Part shown: in pieces, positions 1 to 23,019 of the stretch
How the letters are laid out: every line of letters begins with the position of its first letter
Position numbering within the stretch: the first letter of the stretch is position 1
From: Octopus sinensis
Lineage: Eukaryota
Reading direction: 5' to 3'
DNA length: 23,019 nt
Assembly: GCF_006345805.1 (NCBI RefSeq)
Contig: NW_021836792.1
Coordinates: forward strand, 1 to 23,019
Program-made: the position numbers and the translations under genes
The notes under the pieces: model-generated
Seen by the model: the letters and a program-made list of their open reading frames with translations, nothing else
What the model was told of the DNA's origin: nothing
Database searches by the model: none

Positions 1-78
1 GGATCCAAAGCACATGGTCCTGCATTCAGTCCCACTCTGTGGTTACTTGGCATGTGTCTTCTGCGATAGCCTCAGACC
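1..78 (+). mobile_element. Fragment of an octopus-type tRNA-derived SINE (OR-like head/body), cut by the window edge
   Basis: CACATGGTCCTGCATTCAGTCCCACTCTGTGG...GTGTCTTCTGCGATAGCCTC matches the reverse complement of the SINE head at 13361-13470. The family name is from memory. Confidence 0.65.
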
Positions 79-213
79 AACTCGACTGAGGAAAGAAAAC
101 TCTGAATGACCCATCCTTGTTTTCTTTGTATCGACTATCTGGATGTTTGGTTGTCCCTTTTTTTGTATCACCTAACTGTCTGGATGTTTTGCATTATTGT
201 CGCATTTCGTATG

Positions 214-214
<1 letters not shown>

Positions 215-249
<35 letters not shown>
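215..249. repeat. (TA)n microsatellite
   Basis: Perfect TA run. Confidence 0.95.
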
Positions 250-253
<4 letters not shown>

Positions 254-996
254 TTTTGGTTATATGTTTATACGTTTATTGATACAAAAAATAAGGATTT
301 TTAATTACTATATTTGTTGATTATAATTTAGATACTTATTTAGATACTTAAATAATAAATACATAAAGTATTTATTATTTTATAATTATTATATGCGAAC
401 TAAAATCTAAAAATATTGATAGTGAATATTTTGTTAAATAATTTGGTAATTAAATATTGGAGTATAACTGGGTTAAAAATATTCTATATTTTATTAATGT
501 TTTTTTAAGCTAAATTATATCTTCACAGATAAATACATATTTCTATCTATTTACTCTATTTTTTTACCTTAAATATTTAACATAATAAATGTATCATAGG
601 AAACTGATCCTAATGTTTTAAGTTTCAAATTTTGTTAATGGAGTTTCTTCTATAAGAAAAATTATTATTTTATTTATTTTTTAAATAAATATTGTTTAAC
701 TCTATTTGCTTATTTATTTAACTATTATTGTTAACCTGAAGATTGACTATAATTTTAAATTGAATTCATTTCAATTAAATTTAATTGTAATTCGAATTTC
801 ATTGTAGCCATGAAACATGTAGTTTTTTTATTTATTTTATATTGATTATTCATTTTTATACTTTTTGAGATCTAGTTATATGTTTTATAAAAATATATAT
901 TATTTGTTATTTAAGTTTTGTTTTATGTCTATCACTGTTTGAGTTTCATAATAGTGGTTTTATCTCTAATTTATATTTTATATATATTTATATATA

Positions 997-1689
997 AATT
1001 CTATAATTATGAGTATAATTATAATTAGGGTTCAGCAAAATTTGCTTCACCACATACCGAAATTTAGAAATAGCAGTTAAAAACTACTATTCTACTACTA
1101 TAAGGTATCTCCCAGACAGCAATACTCAACAACTCACTCAGGTAAAGAGAAAAAATAACGAATCTACCTGGCTCTGATTAACTGTACATGCATTTCAGAG
1201 TTAGAGAGATGTGAAAAATGTAAAATCATATTTCTACTCACTCACTCTCCTCATCAGTACAGTAATTCAAATTTTAAATTTGAGAGCACTGATAATTAAT
1301 ATAAGTATTTGATCAAGTGACATCAAACAGCATATATCCAAAGACCAGTACTTCCGAATTCGAACAGATGAATGAGATATTGTATTCCTCCTCATTCACC
1401 CATGTGTGCCAATGAGTAAAAATCTGCAGAAACTGCATTTACTATCAGGGAGAGAATTATATTATCAATAATAATAAAGGGTAAAATTGATTAATAATCA
1501 ATAATTTTCCAAGTAGTTCAGTATGTTAAAAGAACCATTATCGGTAAACTTATTCAAAAATTCCGTAATTACGAATATAATTATAATTAGGGTTCAGCAA
1601 AATTTGCTTCACCACATACCGAAATTTAGAAATAGCAGTTAAAAACTACTATTCTCCTACTATAAGATATCTCCTAGACTGCAATACTC
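997..1689 (+). repeat. Pair of ~130-bp direct repeats (997-1127 and 1558-1689) flanking ~430 bp of unique sequence
   Basis: TATAATTATAATTAGGGTTCAGCAAAATTTGCTTCACCACATACCGAAATTTAGAAATAGCAGTTAAAAACTACTATTCT is shared exactly. The copies diverge after GCAATACTC. Confidence 0.9.
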
Positions 1690-1877
1690 GTTTCAGCTTT
1701 AAAGCACCACTATTGGTTTTGCTACACCTTCATGCACATCATGCAGGTCTCTCAGGTATTTTGGAAGGATATTGGAGAGCTGTGGGCCCTTGAAACCCAA
1801 GCTGTTGCAGTATCTGTCCTGTATTTTGATGGTGAATGTGGGGTATGCAGTGGCTATATAAGCAATGTATTTGGAGG

Positions 1878-1955
1878 CAAAAATGGGTTAGATGGGTGCT
1901 GATGAGAGGGCAAAAACCCCTGAAATATGGCATATAGACTTATTACCCATTTTTG
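1878..1955 (+). ncRNA. Type-I hammerhead ribozyme motif, copy 1 (probably impaired)
   Basis: Core CTGATGA 1899-1905; stem II AGGG/CCCT with CAAAAAC loop; GAAA 1922-1925; stem III ATATG-G-CATAT; AUA site with predicted cut after 1936. Stem I ATGGGTG/GACTTAT has a G.G mismatch at the first pair. Distal stem AAAAATGGGT/ACCCATTTTT. Confidence 0.65.
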
Positions 1956-2235
1956 TCTTCAATCTCATTGTTTGTTTACATCTGACGTCTCGTATACAAA
2001 ACAGTGTTGCAAAAGTCAGTGCTGGCTGTACTTTCTTAAAAATATCTGTAGAAATAACCTTAACAAAATAATGCAAAAAGCACTGCTAATGTAATAGAAC
2101 CTGGTATTGACTTATAAAAACATTTAATATACTTTATAGTATATTATGGTTGCATAACGAAATACATACTAATTGCTACATCCAATAACTTAACACCACT
2201 GTATGTGGTGGCTATATAAGCAATGTGTTTGGAGG

Positions 2236-2319
2236 CAAGAATGGGTTAGATGGGTGCTGATGAAGAGGCAAAGCCCCCCCCCCCCGAAATATGACATATA
2301 CACTCATTACCCATTTTTG
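2236..2319 (+). ncRNA. Type-I hammerhead ribozyme motif, copy 2 (largely intact)
   Basis: Stem I ATGGGTG (2250-2256) / CACTCAT (2301-2307), 7 bp; core CTGATGA 2257-2263 plus an extra A; stem II GAGG...CCCC with an expanded C run; GAAA 2286-2289; stem III ATATG-A-CATAT; AUA site with predicted cut after 2300. Distal stem CAAGAATGGGT/ACCCATTTTTG lies beyond a TAG/T internal loop. Confidence 0.78.
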
Positions 2320-2447
2320 TCTTTGATCTCATTATTTGTTTTCATTTGATGTCTCGATATGAAGCATAGCAAAAATCAGTGCTGGCTATAATTTCTATAG
2401 AATATCTGTAGAAATAACCGTAACAAAATAATTTGAAATTAATTAAG

Positions 2448-2980
2448 ATCAACAGGTTCTTGTTCTCTTTTAAAATTACTCTGCATTCAACAGCTGGAGT
2501 TTCTCCTGCTAAACTGCTGTTCAAACATCACTTGCAGATTGCTTTTCATTTACTGAAACTAGATACTTCTCATCAAATTCTTAGGGTTCAATATGATATG
2601 GAACAAAAGAGAAAAATATTGTGTTCTTGCACTGAATTTTGGAGCTAGTGAATGCTGGGTAAAAGGCACTGTGTCCAGATAGTTGGGTTATGTGTTACAA
2701 TCTGAAGCTTTGAACCCAGTCAGCTGAAGTATTGGCACTCATATTCCTACTGTTACAGTGGCTGGGGTTCTTGTTATTCCTGGAATGCCTACAGTTTCTA
2801 AGTTACCTGAAATGCCAGGTAAAGTTACTGAATTGCCTAAGGTGTCAATTACTGCTGATTCTCCTCTGTATAAATACTGTTGTTTCTCCCAGTACATCTA
2901 AAGTGCTGACTGGTCCCAAAGCTCATAGGTGATGTTACCAATGTCAACTGCCCTCTAGGTTTCATGATTACATATATGGA
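2448..2980 (+). mobile_element. Degenerate Ty3/Gypsy pol C-terminus (end of integrase core plus C-terminal region)
   Basis: NRFLFSFKITLHSTAGVSPAKLLF resembles the Gypsy motif RFLxxYRxTPHSTTGxSPAELLF. After a frameshift comes VLALNFGASECWVKGTVSR*LG, then a P/T-rich linker and a terminal LPSRFHDYI. Confidence 0.75.
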
Positions 2981-3348
2981 AAACATTAATTAATGGTGTT
3001 GGAGTTGTTGTACCAGCAAGAACATTGAAGCAGGAGAAACAATTTCAGTGTTAGTTGTCCAACTATCTATGCAATTCTCCAGCAGAGAAAAGATCTAAAA
3101 GGTGCTTGAAACTGACAGTGGGAGCTATCTTGAAGCATGACTAAGGACAAACAAAATTTGTGTTGAAGTTCCAGTATGCAGGCCTCACATTTAAATAAAC
3201 AACAGTTCCATGGCCATGTTAAGCAAATCTTATATTGCTTTGATCTATGGTTGATAAGGCAATCTCACAATCTTATTTTCCAAACTGGTTTCATCGTTAC
3301 TTTTTGAATGAGTCACTTATATTTCTCTCTTTTTCTAATGTTAATCAG

Positions 3349-3375
3349 AGGAAACAGGACATTGCACATGACACT
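3349..3375 (+). other. Candidate 27-nt cassette or alternative exon of SLC35C1
   Basis: Upstream pyrimidine tract TTTCTCTCTTTTTCTAATGTTAATCAG contains a CTAAT branch-like motif. Downstream donor is ACT|GTAAGT. No transcript evidence. Confidence 0.4.
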
Positions 3376-3602
3376 GTAAGTCCTTCCCAGACTGGTGAGA
3401 TAAAGGCAACCAAAGACAAGGTAGTGGTGTTCAAATATGCTGCATATTGGATCTATTGTCATTAATGTGTAAATACAACTTAGATTTCTAATTTTCTAGC
3501 TGTTCAAATATGTGTGTGTGTGTTTTTGTGTGCATATGTGTGTGTATGTAGGCATATATTTATATATGTGTTTATATATATATATATATATCTTTACCAC
3601 AG

Positions 3603-3663
3603 GTTCATCTCAATATCCATGGTGTTCATTAATAAATACTTATTAAGTAGCAAACAACTGAAG
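3603..3663 (+). CDS. SLC35C1: GDP-fucose transporter 1, internal coding exon (61 nt; begins with the last base of a split codon): (W)FISISMVFINKYLLSSKQLK
   Basis: Acceptor CTTTACCACAG and donor AAG|GTAAGT. The peptide matches the SLC35C1/Gfr TM1 region (human [22 protein letters not shown]) and joins in frame to 12425. Confidence 0.93.
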
Positions 3664-4154
3664 GTAAGTCATCTTCATCAGTTTTAGTTTCAGAACTTAA
3701 CATTATCATATTCCCCCTCTCCTACTAATCACTATACAGTGCACCCAACCACTACATTTAATATATCCAACCGTCAAACTGTTCCTCTGTTCTACTCAGT
3801 GTGTTTGCTTAATTAATTGCATGTCTACTCTGATATTTTCATTATTACTGGGTTTTCTTGGGGTGGTAGGGTATCAAAAACTAAACAAAAAGTAAGACAA
3901 AATATTTATATAATTTTTGCCAATTAATTGGAGATTAAATACATAGCCCATTTCTGTTCAAGCTAGTCCTTATACTAGGCAACCTACAGGTTGTTTTAAA
4001 AGCCCTAGCAAAATCAGTTATATATGAAAATAATAGTGCAAAATACATTTAACAACAAAAAATATGCCAGCTAAAAAAACTTGCCCACTCACTTTTTGTT
4101 GAAGTTGTATGAAATGTTCTTTCACCCATTTTTGTTGTTAATATTATATTAGAT

Positions 4155-4345
4155 AAGGTGGTGAGCTGGCAGAATCATTAGCATGCTTGGCTCCATTTCA
4201 TCCATCTTTATGTTTTGAGTTCAGATTCCTCCATGGCTGACTTTGCCTCTTGTCCTATCAAGATTGATAAAATAAGTACCAGTTTATGTAATCAACTTAT
4301 CCCCTCCCCCAAATTGCTGGCCTGGTGCTGAAATTTGAAATCAAT
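4155..4345 (+). mobile_element. Octopus-type tRNA-derived SINE (OK-like), decayed
   Basis: AAGGTGGTGAGCTGGCAGAATCATTAGC...GAGTTCAGATTCC...GACTTTGCC...GATAAAATAAGTACCAG. Same family as 13521-13690, 15507-15642 and (- strand) 12690-12890. Confidence 0.8.
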
Positions 4346-6912: not shown

Positions 6913-6959
6913 ACTGCCACGTTTCGACTGATTTACTCACCAGCCTTCATCAGGTTTCC
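6913..6959 (-). ncRNA. Decayed minimal hammerhead motif
   Basis: The - strand reads CTGATGA-A-GGCTG(GTGAGTAAAT)CAGTC-GAAA-CGTG. Core and stem II are intact, but the cleavage triplet is GUG and stem I does not pair, so it is predicted inactive. Confidence 0.6.
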
Positions 6960-10693: not shown

Positions 10694-11745
10694 TGAGGTA
10701 TGTTAAAAAATTATCTGACCTTTGGGCATAAAAAATACAGTTTTTATATTTCACAAATTTTATTTAATCACCTTTGAAATACTCCCTCTGGGAGTTCACA
10801 CATTTCTCCCTGTGGTTCTGCCACTGCTGGTAACACCTCAGGAATACCTTCTTTGGAATGATATCAAGCTCTACTGTCACTTTTCTCATAACTTCCCCTT
10901 GTGACTCAAATTGCTTCCTTTTCAGTTTAGGGAAGAGCCAGAAGTCACATGGTGACAAGTTTGGTTATTAGGGAGCCTGTCAAACAAGTAGTGTATTGTT
11001 CTTGACGAGGATTATGTAGGTGGAGTGAGTGTGCACGTTGTCATGGTGAAGTTGCCAATTTTTCACTACCCACGTCTTCCTGTTTTTGACACACACCTTC
11101 ACAAAGGTAATGCATAACTTCCAGGTAGTATTCCTTATTGATTGTTTGGCCTTGTAGTGCATATTCATGATATAAAATACTGTGGAAGTCAAAGAAACAC
11201 AATACCATGAGAGTCTGCTGCGAACCTGTCATGCCCTTTTGGGCCTTGGTGATGACAATTGCTTCCACTGAGGGAACTGGAACCTGGTTTCCGGGTTGTA
11301 ACCATAAACCCATGTCTCCTCAGCAGTGATGATGGTCTTCATGAAGTCTGGGTTGTGTTTTGCAAAATCAAACATATCAGTGATTTCCATGTGAAGTTGC
11401 TTCTGCTGCTTGGAGACAATTTTACCAAGGACATGCACAAACCTTCCATTGAAATGGAATGCACCGATCCTGTGCTTATTCCCACTTGGTGAACAATTTC
11501 CTGGATTGTTATGTGACTATTCACCAAACCTTCTCAATCAACTTCTTGTTTTGGCTTGTGGATGGCCTGCCTGAGCATGCCTCACTCTCTATTGAAGTGT
11601 GGCCATATTTGAAATAGTTTTACCACTCCTTGATCTGAGTTTTGCCCATGGCATCACCACCAAAGGCCTGCTGAATCTTCTGGATGGTTTGAGCTTGAGT
11701 ATTACCAAGCTTTTTGCAAAACACGATGCAATATCTCTGCTTGAT
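10694..11745 (-). mobile_element. Mariner transposon remnant (transposase pseudogene plus 3' TIR; 5' end missing)
   Basis: The - strand reads QRYCIVFCKKLG, GRPSTS, IITAEETWVYGYNPET, QGQTINKEYY, WQLHHDN and MSPCDFWLFPKLK. A TIR-like end TGAGGTATGTTAAAAAATTATCTGACC sits at 10694. Confidence 0.88.
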
Positions 11746-11751
11746 GCATTC

Positions 11752-12005
11752 AGCATCATGGTGTTATCAAATACCTGCAGGTTTAGCCCCCAAGGACATT
11801 CATGCTGACATGGTTGCTACATTAAGTGATGCTGCTTCAGTTTTATTAACTGTGCAACTGTGGGCAACTGAATTTAGGAGGGGAAGGAATGGCTTTGAAC
11901 TGGTTGATCACCCTCCCTATTCTCCTGATTTGGTCCCATCTGACTATCATCTGTTCCCCAAAATGAAAGAAACACACTTAGCTGGGAATCAGTATTGCAG
12001 TATAT
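11752..12005 (+). mobile_element. Internally deleted mariner (irritans/Hsmar2-like) remnant
   Basis: The N-terminal GLAPKDIHADMVATLSDAASVLLTVQLWATEFRRGR is fused directly to the C-terminal NGFELVDHPPYSPDLVPSDYHLFPKMK. Confidence 0.85.
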
Positions 12006-12424
12006 CTGTTGTTAGCAGGTCCATCAACCATGTAGAGGCTTCTTTGGCTTGAATAACATTAAATAGAGAGCGATACTGATATAAGATTAGAGGAATCAAT
12101 GTTGTAGTAGATCTCTATTCAATAAGGTGTCCAAAGGTATTGTTGCCAGACTCTGTTCTCAAAATGTTTTATTGTCCTTGACATTTTTTCTTTTTCACAT
12201 TGTTTGGACATTTTTGTATGTAAAAGGTGACTATTATTTTCCCATTCAGGGGCTTATTTGTAATTGACTTAATTTTCACTTAAATAATAAAATACTTATG
12301 TATTCAGTAATGATGCATCCAGCTTTAATCCAATACATCATATACATCATTCAAAACATATGTTTCTTTAAAATCTTATTGATTGCATTTAATAATCTAA
12401 TTTAATATTTCTTTTCTTTTTCAG

Positions 12425-12565
12425 TTAGATGCTCCATTATTCATCACATGGTACCAATGCTTTATAACTGTGATACTTTGTGCTGTTTTCAGCTTCATCA
12501 GTTTTTTTTTACCAAATCTCGTTAAATTTCCATCAATGAAACTTGAACTAAAGATATGCCGCAGT
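12425..12565 (+). CDS. SLC35C1: GDP-fucose transporter 1, internal coding exon (141 nt, phase 0-0): LDAPLFITWYQCFITVILCAVFSFISFFLPNLVKFPSMKLELKICRS
   Basis: Acceptor TTTCTTTTCTTTTTCAG and donor AGT|GTATGT. The peptide matches human LDTPIFVTFYQCLVTTLLC...VDFPSLRLDLRVARS and continues the 3603-3663 exon in frame. Confidence 0.95.
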
Positions 12566-12689
12566 GTATGTTAGTCTTCTTTTTGTTTTTGAACATTCCT
12601 GTTTACTTTTTATTGTTTTTCTCTTTTTTGTAATTATATATCCATGTAAATTGCATAAGTACACACTTACTGAAACTAATTTCTAACAT

Positions 12690-17054: not shown

Positions 17055-18174
17055 ATAACGGGAAGCTTTATGAAAATAAACAAGACGAAGGCAGGTGGAA
17101 TACAAACAAACAATTGTATTAGTATGGCGCTCAGGAATATAAATAAACCAAGTCTTTTACGTTTCGAGCCTACGCTCTTCAACAGAAAGATACACAGAAA
17201 AGAAACAAGGAGAGAAAAAAAATGAGTGCAGAAGCTAGCGAATCAACATGGCGATCTGATTTCGGCCAGAAGTCAAAGATCAAACGTGAGATGCAAGAGC
17301 GAAATTAGGGGAGATAACAGGGTCAAATGACCTCGCCCCAACATAAGAGTGTGTGTGTGTATGAGAGAGTATGTAGTGCGTATGAGAGGTCTGGACGTGT
17401 GTATATATATATATATGATGTGATGTTCAAAGTCGTATGGTGTAGTGTAAAGAGAGGAGATGAGGGGAAGAGGGGAGGTAAGGGGGGGAGAGAGGAAATG
17501 AGGAGGGATAGAGTGGAGGGGGAGAGCGGAAGAGGGGGGAAGGAAAGAGAAGAGGAGGGAGAAGGGGAAAGGTGAGAGTGAGGAGGGGAGAAGAAAAGAA
17601 GGAAGGGGTGGTGAGATGAGATGAGGGTGGTGAAGGAAAGAGGAGGGAGGGGGAAGGGGGAGAAGGAAGGAGAGGAGAAGAGGAGGGAGGAGAGAGGGAG
17701 GGGGAGAGAGCGGGAGAGGGAGGGAGCAGAGAGAAAGAGGGAAGGGGAAGAGGGAAGAAGGGAAGAGGAGGGAAAGTGAGTAGGGGTGAAAGGATGAAGG
17801 ACTGAAGAGAAGTAGGGGTTGGGGAGGTTAGATGAGGAGGTGGGGAGAGTTGAAACCAAATGGCGTAAAAGAGCGAAGAGAGAAGATTAATTCCTGTTCA
17901 CGGCGCAAACAGGAATCCGGATGGCCTCTGTGCAAGGAGAAACCGAACACTGACAGGTGTTGCAAGAAGTGACCGGTGGAGCGGAAATGGCGTGAGACCG
18001 GTGTGTCGTTGGCAAGGCGGATGTCACGGAGGTGTTCTGCGAACCGGTCAGCCAAGTGGCGTCCCGTTTGTCCGATGTACAGGGAATGGCAGAGAGAGCA
18101 AATGACGCAAAAGATGATATTGCTGGAGGTGCAGGTGAAGGAGTTGATGATGGGATAGGGTCGATGATGGGTGA
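17055..18174 (-). mobile_element. Penelope-like element, 5'-truncated: GIY-YIG endonuclease end (~18160-17828), polypyrimidine 3' region and terminal HHR; CpG-rich (young)
   Basis: The - strand reads PIINSFTCTSSNIIFCVICSLCHSLYIGQTGRHLADRFAEHLRDIRLANDTPVSRHF...RREQELIFSLRSFTPFGFN (YIG at 18071-18079). Both sides abut TA/TATG arrays. Confidence 0.9.
17153..17190 (-). ncRNA. Minimal type-I hammerhead fold with variant core CUGUUGA
   Basis: The - strand reads TCTTT-CTGTTGA-A-GAGC(GTAG)GCTC-GAAA-CGTA|AAAGA: perfect 5-bp stem I, perfect 4-bp stem II, palindromic ACGU stem III and a GUA site. It lies where PLE HHRs are expected. Confidence 0.65.
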
Positions 18175-18621
18175 TTATATATAATATAATATATATATAT
18201 ATATATTATATATATATATATATATGTATTTGTATGTATGCATATATAATATGTATTTGTATGTATGCATATATATATGTATTTGTATGTATGCATATAT
18301 ATATATGTATTTGTATGTATGCATATATATATATATGTATTTGTATGTATGCATATATATATGTATTTGTATGTATGCATATATATATGTATTTGTATGT
18401 ATGCATATATATATATATGTATGTATTTGTATGTATGCATATATATATATATATGTATGTATTTGTATGTATGCATATATATATATGTATGTATTTGTAT
18501 GTATGCATATATATATGTATGTATTTGTATGTATGCATATATATATATGTATGTATGTATTTGTATGTATGCATATATATGTATGTATTTGTATGTATGC
18601 ATATATATATATGTATGTATA

Positions 18622-18654
<33 letters not shown>

Positions 18655-18706
18655 ATAATGTATATGTATGTATGTATGTATATAATGTATATGTATGTAT
18701 GTAATG

Positions 18707-18749
<43 letters not shown>

Positions 18750-19230
18750 TATATATGTATTTGTATGTATGCATATATATATATGTATTTGTAGTATGCA
18801 TATATATATATGTATTTGTATGTATGCATATATATATGTATTTGTATGTATGCATATATATATATATGTTTTGTATGTATGCATATATATATGTATTTGT
18901 ATGTATGCATATATATGTATGTATGTATGTATATATATATATATGTATGTATTTGTATGTATGCATATATATATATATATGTATGTATTTGTATGTATGC
19001 ATATATATATATGTATGTATTTGTATGTATGCATATATATATGTATGTATTTGTATGTATGCATATATATATATGTATGTATGTATTTGTATGTATGCTA
19101 TATATGTATGTATTTGTATGTATGCATATATATATATGTATGTATATATATATATGTATGTATGTATGTATGTATTGTATGTATGCATATATATATGTAT
19201 GTATATATATATATATGTATGTATGTAATG

Positions 19231-19268
<38 letters not shown>

Positions 19269-19312
19269 TATCTATATATATATAAAAATATATGTGTATA
19301 TAATATATATAT
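18175..19312. repeat. ~1.14-kb compound mini/microsatellite with higher-order unit TATGTATTTGTATGTATGCA(TA)n
   Basis: The unit recurs dozens of times with variable TA/TATG counts. All I/Y/M/C/H-rich ORFs here are artefacts. Confidence 0.95.
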
Positions 19313-20057: not shown

Positions 20058-20698
20058 AGTTAGAATTATATACTTCTTTCATTTCCTCATCTCTTCTACC
20101 TCTCTCTCTCCCCTTACATATATTCCCCCACTTCCAGCTCCTTTCTCCTTCCTTTATCTCTCTTTACGCTTACTCTTTCCCTCTCTCTTGCATATCTACT
20201 CTTTTTCTCATCTCTCTCCCTCCCTTTCATATCCTCTTCTTCTCTCATTTCTCTTTCCTTCCATCTCACATCTATCTCTCCTGTCATACTCTCACCCTCT
20301 CTCTCATATACTTCTCATTCACCCATTCTTCTCACTCCGTCTCTCACTCTCTCACATCCTTCATCCTGTCTCTCTTTCTCTTGCTATCCTCTCCCTCCCT
20401 TCTTGTTTCTCTTTCCTTCCCCTCTCTTCACTCTGCCTCTCTTTCTCTTTGACTCTTCTCCATCACTCTGTCTCTCCTTCTATTCACCTCCTCTCCCCCT
20501 CCCCTACCTCCCTCTATCTCTTAACAACCCACACCCTTTGCTTTCCTCCTATCACCCTCATGATTTCTTTCATAGAATCTATCTTCCTTAATCTCCCTCT
20601 CTTTCCCTATTTCCCCCTCTGTGTTTCTCCGTCTCTACCTCTCTCTATCGCTCATTACCTCTCTAGCCTCTACTCCCCCTCTGGACTTCAAAACAAAG

Positions 20699-21487
20699 AT
20701 GGCACCAAAGTGGGAAAAGAAAGAGTTAAATCTTCTGCTAAGAGCATGGACGATTGCTTGTGGTGATCTGCCGAACAACATCATCACTGCCGTGCTAAAG
20801 AACAATGGATTTCATAGACCCATTGACCAAATAGAACCAAAAAAAGGTGAATTTATCTGGTCTTACATGCTTATAAGACCACACATCAAAATATTGGATA
20901 GCATAATTGAAAATTATTGTGGCAAGGCTGATGAGGATGAAGAGGACGAAAAAGAGAAGGAAGCCGGAAGTCTCTGTGATCCAGGGGTTCCTCAGGAAAA
21001 TGGATCACCTACCCCGGTGAATGACCAGGTAGTGAAGGATAGGGAAGCCAAGGGAGCAGAAACTGGAAGCCCCCCTGTACCAGTGGTCCTACAAAGAAAT
21101 GAGAAATTAGAAAAAGAGAAGAAAAAAGGAAGGTCCAAAAACAAAAATAAGGAGAGAAAGGAAGGAAATGGAAAAACAACCAAAGCTGAAACCCCAACCC
21201 ATCACACAAACAGCAGAGAACCCCATGGAGGATTCAATGCCACCCAGTACACTTCAGGAAAGAAGAAATCTGGAAGGCACAGAAGAACCTGTAAATTCTA
21301 CTTGCAGGGCAAATGTTGGCATGGGGAGGATGGTAAAAACTGCCGATTCGCCCACCCGACACCCCGCCAAAACTTCAGGGGACTCAAAGAGAAGAGCTTT
21401 ACTGAGGGAAGACAAGAAATGTCTCCCAGGAAAACATTCAGAAAAGAATTGTGCTCCTCAGATGTTCTGCACAATGCAGCAGCTTAG
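20699..21487 (+). CDS. LINE ORF1-like protein (262 aa in this frame; acidic and basic tracts; CCCH zinc finger); C-terminus frameshifted
   Basis: ATG at 20699 (MAPKWEKKELN...). CKFYLQGKCWHGEDGKNCRFAH fits C-x7-C-x8-C-x3-H, and degenerate further fingers follow. Confidence 0.7.
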   Translation: MAPKWEKKELNLLLRAWTIACGDLPNNIITAVLKNNGFHRPIDQIEPKKGEFIWSYMLIRPHIKILDSIIENYCGKADEDEEDEKEKEAGSLCDPGVPQENGSPTPVNDQVVKDREAKGAETGSPPVPVVLQRNEKLEKEKKKGRSKNKNKERKEGNGKTTKAETPTHHTNSREPHGGFNATQYTSGKKKSGRHRRTCKFYLQGKCWHGEDGKNCRFAHPTPRQNFRGLKEKSFTEGRQEMSPRKTFRKELCSSDVLHNAAA

Positions 21488-21606
21488 CAAGAGTCTTTTT
21501 TGTGCATGGCACAAAGGATTGTCCAGCAGCTAACCTGGCTACACCAAGCACAGAGAAGAAACCCTGCCCACCACTATGCAAGACCACCACAGTCAACAGA
21601 CACGGG

Positions 21607-23019
21607 ATGGCCTCCCCTAACGCCTGCACAGCCGTCACCCCAATACTTTTACTAAATATTGGGGGTCTGTTGTATCAAAATAGAAACAAAATTTCTTTCC
21701 TGAGAGATCTTACTGCATGCAATCAAGCCCTATACATAACACTCGTGGAAACTCACCTCAGACCTGATATAGAGGATGCAGAAGTACACGCACCAAACTA
21801 TACCATACTGCAAACAGACAAGGGAAAGGAGCCATGGTGGAGTTGCTGTATACATCCGAGATGACATACTCAAATTTGGTATGTGACACTTTAATTGTAT
21901 ACATAAGACAACATAATATAGTCATATGCAATACATATTGCCCACCAGATGCCCCAAATCACATAGGCAAGTTTGAAGATTGCCTCACAAGAATTAAAGA
22001 AATCCTCATGAATCTGGAACACCACGTGACCATATTTCTTATGGGTGATTTCAACTTCCCCAACGTCAAATGGCCCGAAGGTCTCATACTCTCAGGAATG
22101 AATCATTGCAAGCAAGTACAGGTGGAGTCCCTGCTCAACCTCACCAATGCCTTATTCATGGAGCAAGTTGTACTCAAGCCAACTAGGGCGAATAACATTC
22201 TGGATCTCTGCTTCATGAACAATATGGACATCATTCATGATGTGAAAGTGACACCAACATTAGTTTCGGATCACAACATAACAGAGCTGTCTATGTTTGG
22301 GCCGAAAGTAACCAGAGACATACAGTCTAAAGGAAGCACCCAAAATCTCTCCAATCTAAACTTCCACAAAGCAGATTGGAAATCGATCCAAAAAGAGACC
22401 CTCAGAGAGGACTGGCCGGAATGTCTCTCCATACCAGACATTGACATGAAACTAGAATGTTTCATGTCTTCTGTGCAAGCCGTATACCAGAAATATGTCT
22501 CAGAGTACAAGGCCAAAACAAATAGGAGCAAGATTCCAAGAGACAGGAAGATCCTCATGAGATGACGGATGAAGGTTGCAAATAATCTCAACCAACATCC
22601 CAAAAGTAGCGAAATGTCCCACCTAAAAACAACACTGATGGAGATTGAAAAAAGGCTGCAACAATCCTATGTGAGGGAGAAAGCAGACAAAGAAGCCTGG
22701 ATTGTAAAAAACATTAAATCAAACCCAAAGGCCTTCTTTCATTACACGAAAGAAACAGTCTCAGTGCACTGCAAGATAGGACCCCTCCTCCAAAAGGATG
22801 GCTCCCTCACAGACAGTCAACTAAGATCAGTGAGATGCTGAATGACCAGTTCAAAAGTGTCTTTACCACCCCGTTGGAACACAGACAAGTGAACAAACCA
22901 GTGGACTTCTTTGCCGTCTCACCTATAACCAGCGAGGCAGTTACAATAGAATGTATTGACATTAGCGAAGATGTCCTACTAGTCATAGATGAAGTGGACA
23001 CAAACGCAACTACTGGTCA
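21607..23019 (+). pseudogene. LINE ORF2 apurinic-like endonuclease and linker, several frameshifts
   Basis: APE motifs LLLNIGGL, VETHL, GRSHGGVAVY (after a frameshift), TYCPP, GDFNFP, NILDLCF and SDHN. The linker contains NFHKADW, IPRDRKILMR and IKSNPKAFFHY...IGPL. Confidence 0.9.

Follow-up and report, generated by a model that had tools for sequence, protein, structure and literature searches.

Does the hammerhead-like motif at 2236-2319 in an Octopus sinensis contig represent a ribozyme that acts on a host gene, or does it belong to something that merely came to lie there? The window, meaning the whole stretch of DNA analysed here, covers 23,019 nucleotides of contig NW_021836792.1 (assembly GCF_006345805.1, positions 1 to 23,019 of the forward strand). 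An earlier note had described 2236-2319 as a near-intact hammerhead ribozyme (HHR) with an extended stem I and a run of 12 C in stem II, and had placed it on the transcribed strand of a probable SLC35C1 intron, where it could cut the pre-mRNA. We dissected this motif, hereafter copy 2, into the following parts, all read directly from the sequence.

2236-2319 (+): HHR copy 2, type-I topology
2236-2246 (+): distal 5' arm of stem I, CAAGAAUGGGU, 11 bp
2247-2249 (+): internal loop of stem I, UAG opposite U2308
2250-2256 (+): proximal 5' arm of stem I, AUGGGUG, 7 bp
2257-2263 (+): core CUGAUGA
2264-2285 (+): degenerate helix II region, AGAGGCAAAG (AGAGG-CAAAG), then 12 C
2274-2285 (+): the run of 12 C inside the helix II region
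2286-2288 (+): GAA
2289-2299 (+): helix III, AUAU/GAC/AUAU, 4 A-U pairs and a 3-nt loop
2300 (+): H17, A2300, with the predicted cut after 2300
2301-2319 (+): 3' arm of stem I, CACUCAU at 2301-2307, U2308, and ACCCAUUUUUG at 2309-2319

The elements follow each other in the order of a type-I HHR (5' arm of stem I, C3-A9, helix II, G12-A14, helix III, H17, 3' arm of stem I), and helix III is closed by A15.1-U16.1 on direct reading. The identification as a hammerhead-type motif with type-I topology and a full core was thus correct. Direct reading and RNAfold both returned the stem I that had been claimed, with 7 bp, a TAG/T internal loop and 11 bp (z = -2.8 for 2236-2319), and 7 further pairs are possible between 2229-2235 and 2320-2326. 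The reported 12-C run is likewise present at 2274-2285.

We assessed chance with a descriptor blind to helix II, whose requirements were the core and GAAA, no fewer than 4 bp in helix III, UH, and an uninterrupted stem I of 7 bp or more. This descriptor matched 2236-2319, and it found two matches in 2000 dinucleotide shuffles of the window on both strands, a rate of about 0.001 per shuffled window. Four other CTGATGA...GAAA strings, at 1231-1257 (-), 6922-6953 (-), 12487-12501 (-) and 20928-20951 (+), have neither stem I nor stem III and were rejected as chance occurrences; one of them lies antisense in exon 3 of SLC35C1 and one in a LINE ORF. Because matches in shuffled sequence are this rare and the other strings come without helices, a chance origin of the copy 2 motif is excluded and the observation is real.

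The motif does not stand alone. A second HHR, copy 1, lies upstream in the same orientation, and both are carried by a pair of direct repeats with the following parts.

1843-2072 (+): repeat copy A, about 230 bp, carries HHR copy 1; end-to-end homologue of the monomer in the read assemblies L002 and L003 (see below)
2073-2200 (+): spacer B, 128 bp, between the repeat copies
2201-2432 (+): repeat copy A', carries HHR copy 2; homologous to the L002/L003 monomer
1937-2300 (+): unit between the predicted cut sites, 364 nt, the RNA expected to be freed by cleavage at both sites
1878-1955 (+): HHR copy 1, paralogue of copy 2
1878-1898 (+): 5' arm of stem I of copy 1
1899-1905 (+): core CUGAUGA of copy 1, followed by an extra G1906
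1907-1921 (+): helix II of copy 1, AGGG/CCCU, with loop CAAAAAC
1922-1924 (+): GAA of copy 1
1925-1935 (+): helix III of copy 1, AUAU-GGC-AUAU
1936 (+): H17 of copy 1, A1936, with the predicted cut after 1936
1937-1955 (+): 3' arm of stem I of copy 1

Repeat copies A and A' are about 83-88% identical, and the repeat period is 358-364 bp, of which 1.64 units are present. The predicted cut sites A1936 and A2300 lie 364 nt apart. The element has a GC content of 33-37% (35% for the 364-nt unit), and its ORFs gave no Pfam match. Folding of the 364-nt unit gave z = -3.1, with the extended stem I predicted to close the molecule. Low GC (<45-50%), a non-coding sequence and a self-paired unit are traits of retrozymes, and all are found here. 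We found nothing homologous to spacer B in L002/L003 or in the rest of the window. Alignment scores for extending the repeat to the left of 1843 or to the right of 2432 stayed within the shuffle null, and no target-site duplication was visible around the element. Just upstream lies a second direct repeat of about 145 bp (983-1127 and 1545-1689, 91% identical, 562 bp spacing), whose sequence bears no relation to the hammerhead element; it probably represents either a local duplication or a further interspersed repeat.

How intact are the two hammerheads? Both window copies carry the full HHR core (C3 U4 G5 A6 N7 G8 A9, G12 A13 A14, A15.1-U16.1 and an H17 other than G), and the flanks of the core pair into an open helix I (7 bp + UAG/U + 11 bp). 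The G10.1-C11.1 pair directly after A9 is absent from both. In copy 2, helix II set flush with the core would begin with the mismatch A10.1xC11.1; if an extra nucleotide is allowed after A9, the series becomes G-C, AxC, G-C, G-C, followed by the C tract. Copy 1 has the extra G and then A-U, G-C, G-C, G-C, so that its closing pair is A-U and not G-C, and its 1.1-2.1 pair at the base of stem I is a G.G mismatch. Natural HHR variants with an extra nucleotide before helix II have been described in the literature. A standard descriptor that includes helix II accepted copy 1 and rejected copy 2. The predicted stability of the copy 2 helix III hairpin is 0 kcal/mol, and in both copies the HHR secondary structure is not the minimum free energy (MFE) structure and lies several kcal/mol above it. 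We searched Rfam 15, in which the hammerhead models at issue are Hammerhead_1, _3, _II, HH9 and HH10. The gathering threshold, applied to the whole window, returned no hammerhead family, and neither did a cutoff of E<=10 in 1700-2500 (801 nt), 1885-1950 (66 nt) or 2243-2314 (72 nt). The output consisted of weak snoRNA/miRNA noise arising from the long hairpin and the C/D-box-like UGAUGA. The wording "near-intact" is too generous for copy 2, because helix II is broken, the helix III hairpin has no stability of its own, the HHR fold lies above the MFE and Rfam finds no match.

The comparison of the two copies also bears on the suggestion in the earlier note that their differences reveal structural constraint. 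The differences themselves are as described: A1881 corresponds to G2239, which turns an A-U into a G.U pair, and loop III reads GGC in one copy and GAC in the other. The constraint drawn from them does not follow, because an A-to-G change opposite U always gives G.U, the change is one-sided and there are only two sequences. The HHR without helix II is 92% identical between A and A', against 82% for the rest of the repeat, and the most altered segment between the window copies is helix II. With two sequences, this difference is at best weak evidence for constraint on the HHR since the duplication.

The helix III sequence suggests how intact members of the family may have worked. AUAU-GNC-AUAU, which comprises helix III and its loop, is palindromic except for its centre. 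A helix III duplex between copies is predicted at -5.3 to -8.4 kcal/mol as against 0 for the hairpin. The explicit double-hammerhead pairing of the two window copies scores -48.7 kcal/mol, two monomer folds together -37.3 kcal/mol, and the extended helix III is part of the two-strand MFE structure of the window copies. Such double action has been described in most metazoan type-I hammerheads, in amphibian retrozymes and in the hammerheads of Penelope elements (PMC4209133, PMC7229834, PMC7761336). An unpaired nucleotide between A9 and helix II is typical of the Penelope-element hammerheads (PMC4209133); both window copies have this extra nucleotide, and the third copy described below is compatible with it, the register of its helix II being uncertain. 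Since the palindrome is predicted to be stable only when paired between copies, intact family members probably acted as double hammerheads. On the same folding predictions, cleavage by copy 2 alone is doubtful, and any remaining activity would more plausibly need both copies together.

A third copy came to light through a 59-aa ORF that reads through the hammerhead (1892-2068), which we used as a phmmer query against 1.84 billion representative proteins. The one true match, P0071 (72 aa, beginning MGADERA, with a common LIVCxHLTS stretch), is the translation of another copy of the repeat, and its DNA was found in two Logan read assemblies, L002 and L003, which represent the same locus at 99.8% identity. 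Both contain a single 230-bp unit that aligns end to end with the window repeat at 74-77% identity. There is no second copy within about 1 kb in L002/L003 and no homology to the spacer, and the L003 flanks showed no homology above the null to spacer B or to the window flanks. The core of the third copy fails at GAGA for GAAA (GAG for GAA), which leaves this hammerhead dead, and the copy has in addition a 2-nt insertion in loop III and an irregular helix II. Stem I is kept across the copies, with 95.7% of cells paired as against 38-61% in slid controls, and two of its pairs differ in both partners (C-G became U-A, and U-A became G.U).

Another phmmer match, P0070 (332 aa, E = 8e-9), was rejected as a spurious summation over repeats. 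Its source is a 53-nt tandem repeat that is unrelated to the element, has no HHR core and is translated as a 332-aa ORF at 3001-3999 of an ENA metagenome contig (L004); this case shows that tandem-repeat ORFs can inflate phmmer matches. We also scanned metagenome, prokaryote-genome and viral collections with exact and degenerate DNA patterns, with 0 matches. A word-based protein search with the 59-aa ORF returned nothing, and with the ORF of the third copy it returned only that ORF itself. A literature search on the SRA runs behind L002/L003 likewise gave nothing relevant. The evidence for dispersal thus consists of one additional locus, found through the protein search with the ORF. A 25-nt stretch (GGCAGTGAGCTGGCAGAATCATT-like, 92%) occurs at 4155-4179 of the window, at 933-957 of L002 and at 1027-1051 of L003, and is likely another interspersed repeat of cephalopods. 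Because window and contigs have this stretch in common, L002/L003 may come from a related cephalopod. The motif at 2236-2319 is therefore not a lone intronic ribozyme dedicated to the host: it sits in one of two repeats of about 230 bp, and a further copy exists elsewhere.

Where, then, does the element lie with respect to SLC35C1, which encodes a GDP-fucose transporter? Two coding exons of this gene are present in the window.

3603-3666 (+): SLC35C1 coding exon 2, whose first base completes a split Trp codon, (W)FISISMVFINKYLLSSKQLK
12425-12566 (+): SLC35C1 coding exon 3, encoding LDAPLFITWYQC...KICRS

The closest protein to exons 2-3 is the GDP-fucose transporter of Argonauta hians, itself an octopod, at 91% identity, which marks the window as octopod DNA. 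The first coding exon, which must end in the split Trp codon, was not detectable in 1-3602; in Argonauta it encodes 31 aa ending in ...ANYW and lies 5.3 kb upstream of exon 2. A candidate exon 1 at 3373-3450 (+) ('...KVVVFKYAAYW', KATKDKVVVFKYAAYW) was rejected, as it has no GT donor after the split Trp and fails to match exon 1 of the close relative Argonauta. Its ORF has a weak similarity to some SLC35C1 N-termini (E of about 0.07-0.09 over 44 queries), and its resemblance to an N-terminal exon is probably due to chance; if it did prove to be an exon, the hammerhead element would precede the coding sequence and intron 1 would not contain it. As exons 2 and 3 are on the forward strand, exon 1 falls outside the window and exon 1 of Argonauta lies 5.3 kb upstream, the element is likely in intron 1 of SLC35C1 on the sense strand, so that the intronic, transcribed-strand location in the earlier note can be kept as likely.

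We compared the Argonauta hians SLC35C1 locus (L001) with positions 1-3700 of the window. Only exon 2 aligned; the Argonauta locus has no homology to the element and no convincing HHR motif. As the element is absent from the orthologous Argonauta intron, the insertion is lineage-specific and does not represent a conserved intronic ribozyme. In Xenopus, 42-44% of the non-LTR retrozymes lie in introns, so that the intronic position of this copy is unremarkable.

Other mobile sequences surround the element. Intron 2 of SLC35C1 contains fragments of mariner/Tc1-type transposases at 11041-11313 (-) and 11714-12052 (+); one of them matches Pfam Transposase_1 (E = 6e-06), and the other carries the motif DHPPYSPDLVPSDYHLF. 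An ORF series of a LINE-type retrotransposon occupies 20621-22841 (+), and its 243-aa ORF at 21834-22565 matches Pfam Exo_endo_phos_2, 'Endonuclease-reverse transcriptase', with E = 1.2e-11. The introns around the element are rich in such mariner and LINE debris. A 75-aa ORF at 17828-18055 (-) (MADRFAEHLRDIRL...), without a Pfam match, may correspond to the C-terminal half of a Penelope-type (GIY-YIG) endonuclease. This ORF adjoins a 1.1-kb (TA)n-rich microsatellite (18176-19312) and a purine-rich tract (about 17330-17773). Naiad-clade members of the Penelope-like elements (PLEs) are reported to favour (TA)n as a target and to persist in cephalopods as no more than remnants. Directly after the second hammerhead repeat, an ORF at 2424-2645 (+) contains ...HSTAGVSPAKLLF..., which we assume to be similar to the integrase-core motif of Ty3/gypsy-type elements; this ORF also has no Pfam match.

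Three other explanations have to be weighed against a decaying retroelement insertion. If the host had exapted an intronic ribozyme, 2236-2319 would be under selection and would cut nascent SLC35C1 pre-mRNA after A2300, thereby regulating the gene, a role that has been proposed for the conserved HH9/HH10 ribozymes in amniote introns. The sense orientation in a likely intron 1, the intact core nucleotides, the long stem I and the slightly higher conservation of the HHR part between the copies (92% against 82%) are what such a ribozyme would show. That difference is small and comes from two sequences, however, and the motif is one of three copies of an interspersed repeat with no homologous sequence in the orthologous Argonauta intron. 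Moreover, helix II, which catalysis needs, is the most disrupted part, with a microsatellite-like 12-C expansion, and neither HH9/HH10 nor any other hammerhead model of Rfam gives a match. We regard exaptation as very unlikely. Even further from a credible account is the view that the locus is not ribozyme-derived at all and represents a locally duplicated A/T-rich hairpin that acquired CUGAUGA and GAAA by chance. The missing Rfam match and an HHR fold that is not the predicted MFE structure fit this view, but two copies have all core nucleotides in the right order at the right helix junctions, a shuffled window yields about 0.001 descriptor matches, known metazoan type-I motifs agree in cut-site context and in the palindrome of helix III, and the third copy keeps the architecture except for a single A-to-G change in the core.

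Less unlikely than these two, though still an unlikely explanation, is that the element is the remnant of a PLE. The 230-bp repeats would then be pseudo-LTRs, the PLE having been either autonomous or internally deleted, and the hammerheads would be of the PLE type and not those of a distinct retrozyme family. PLE hammerheads have two of the traits seen here, an additional nucleotide following A9 and a palindrome in helix III; the A-B-A arrangement at this locus and the solo copy with matching ends at another one resemble an LTR/solo-LTR pattern; and a 2026 preprint argues for the origin of animal retrozymes from PLE pseudo-LTRs. The helices argue against it: helix I here is at least 18 bp, helix II is short and a 4-bp helix III is present, and the reported minimal HHRs of PLEs have a short helix I, a helix II of 6-8 bp and little or no helix III. 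There are also only 128 bp between the repeats, with no reverse transcriptase or endonuclease ORF in or adjoining the element. The GIY-YIG-like ORF at 17828-18055 (-) would fit a PLE remnant, by a likeness that we presume and that has no Pfam match behind it.

The explanation that we prefer, with a probability of roughly 0.7, is that 1843-2432 is an old and decaying insertion of a short non-coding hammerhead retroelement of the metazoan retrozyme or Penelope-associated kind, in sense orientation and most likely in intron 1 of SLC35C1. Following the published retrozyme cycle, a transcript spanning two units would fold, and its hammerheads would cut, most likely as a double hammerhead through the inter-copy helix III. 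Cleavage would release the unit RNA with 5'-OH and cyclic-phosphate ends, as in that cycle. A tRNA ligase of the RtcB type could then circularise the RNA, and a Penelope-like reverse transcriptase could copy it into the genome in single or more-than-unit length. No Penelope RT/EN ORF was found in or adjoining 1843-2432.

At the present locus, copy 2 has the broken helix II and the 12 C, and copy 1 has the A-U closing pair and the G.G mismatch. As both ribozymes carry such lesions, they probably cut SLC35C1 pre-mRNA weakly or not at all, and an influence on the host gene, if there is one, would be incidental. A tandem reading of the insertion is opposed by the 1.6 units found here and by the third copy, a solitary monomer that consists of the 230-bp segment and has no spacer. 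These observations fall short of demonstrating a true tandem (A+B)n array, and an LTR-like A-B-A arrangement with solo copies, or two nearby insertions, fit equally well. A bolder version of the retroelement reading, which we consider quite improbable, is that both hammerheads still act as a double hammerhead on SLC35C1 intron-1 RNA and thereby produce a 364-nt circle and lower the amount of productive SLC35C1 mRNA, in an A-spacer-A, LTR-like architecture. If this version were true, the retrozyme would be using the promoter of a housekeeping gene and host transcription would yield a 364-nt circular RNA, and A-spacer-A with solo copies would form a link between the LTR retrozymes of plants and the tandem retrozymes of animals.

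Among known systems, we compared the proposed decaying retroelement with the non-LTR retrozymes of metazoans, which consist of low-GC repeats of 150-450 bp with a type-I HHR and a weak helix III that acts as a dimer (PMC7229834, PMC7761336, PMC4209133). Those of coral, mussel and axolotl (Cervera & de la Pena 2020, PMC7229834) are likewise short, low-GC, non-coding repeats with an HHR, and the 364-nt unit falls within their published range of 170-400 nt. A further likeness is that the unit pairs with itself and that stem I continues as a long helix, and the weak helix III that implies dimeric action is found in the retrozymes of amphibians. Molluscs are already known as hosts, since mussel has repeats of 350-390 bp (PMC7229834). 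In contrast to the 1.6 units found here, the known elements form longer arrays, and they are simple tandems whereas the present layout may be an LTR-like A-B-A. The hammerheads here also carry lesions.

The pseudo-LTR hammerheads of PLEs (Cervera & de la Pena 2014, PMC4209133) have the same type-I topology, the unpaired nucleotide between A9 and helix II, and a palindromic helix III/loop 3 from which dimers between the direct repeats are expected. In their minimal HHRs, G10.1-C11.1 is conserved, helix I has 4-5 bp, helix II has 6-8 bp, and helix III is rudimentary or missing (PMC4209133), whereas helix I here is long and helix II has 3-4 bp with a non-canonical closing pair; nor is there an RT/EN ORF between the repeats. 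The satellite HHRs of newt satellite 2, Schistosoma Sm-alpha and cave cricket (RF00163, Hammerhead_1) also place a type-I HHR within a dispersed or tandem repeat of a few hundred bp and have a stem I internal loop facing loop II. The Rfam model for them matches neither window copy, and because their loop sequences differ from those found here, the tertiary contacts cannot be assumed in the window copies. The amniote HH9/HH10 (RECK, CTCL, DTNB; de la Pena & Garcia-Robles 2010) are sense-strand intronic hammerheads as well. Unlike the present repeat family, which is decaying and absent from the Argonauta orthologue, they are single-copy, ultraconserved at orthologous positions and equipped with a stable helix III.

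The locus is thus most likely a decaying copy of a mobile element in a repeat-rich intron, and it gives no evidence that a ribozyme controls the GDP-fucose transporter. The element is of a known and ordinary kind, in a group in which it had previously gone unnoted; we found no report of hammerhead or retrozyme elements from cephalopods in the searchable literature. If confirmed genome-wide, cephalopods would join the animals with hammerhead-bearing, retrozyme-like repeats, and the combination of 230-bp HHR repeats, a short spacer and solo copies would bear on the proposed descent of animal retrozymes from Penelope pseudo-LTRs.
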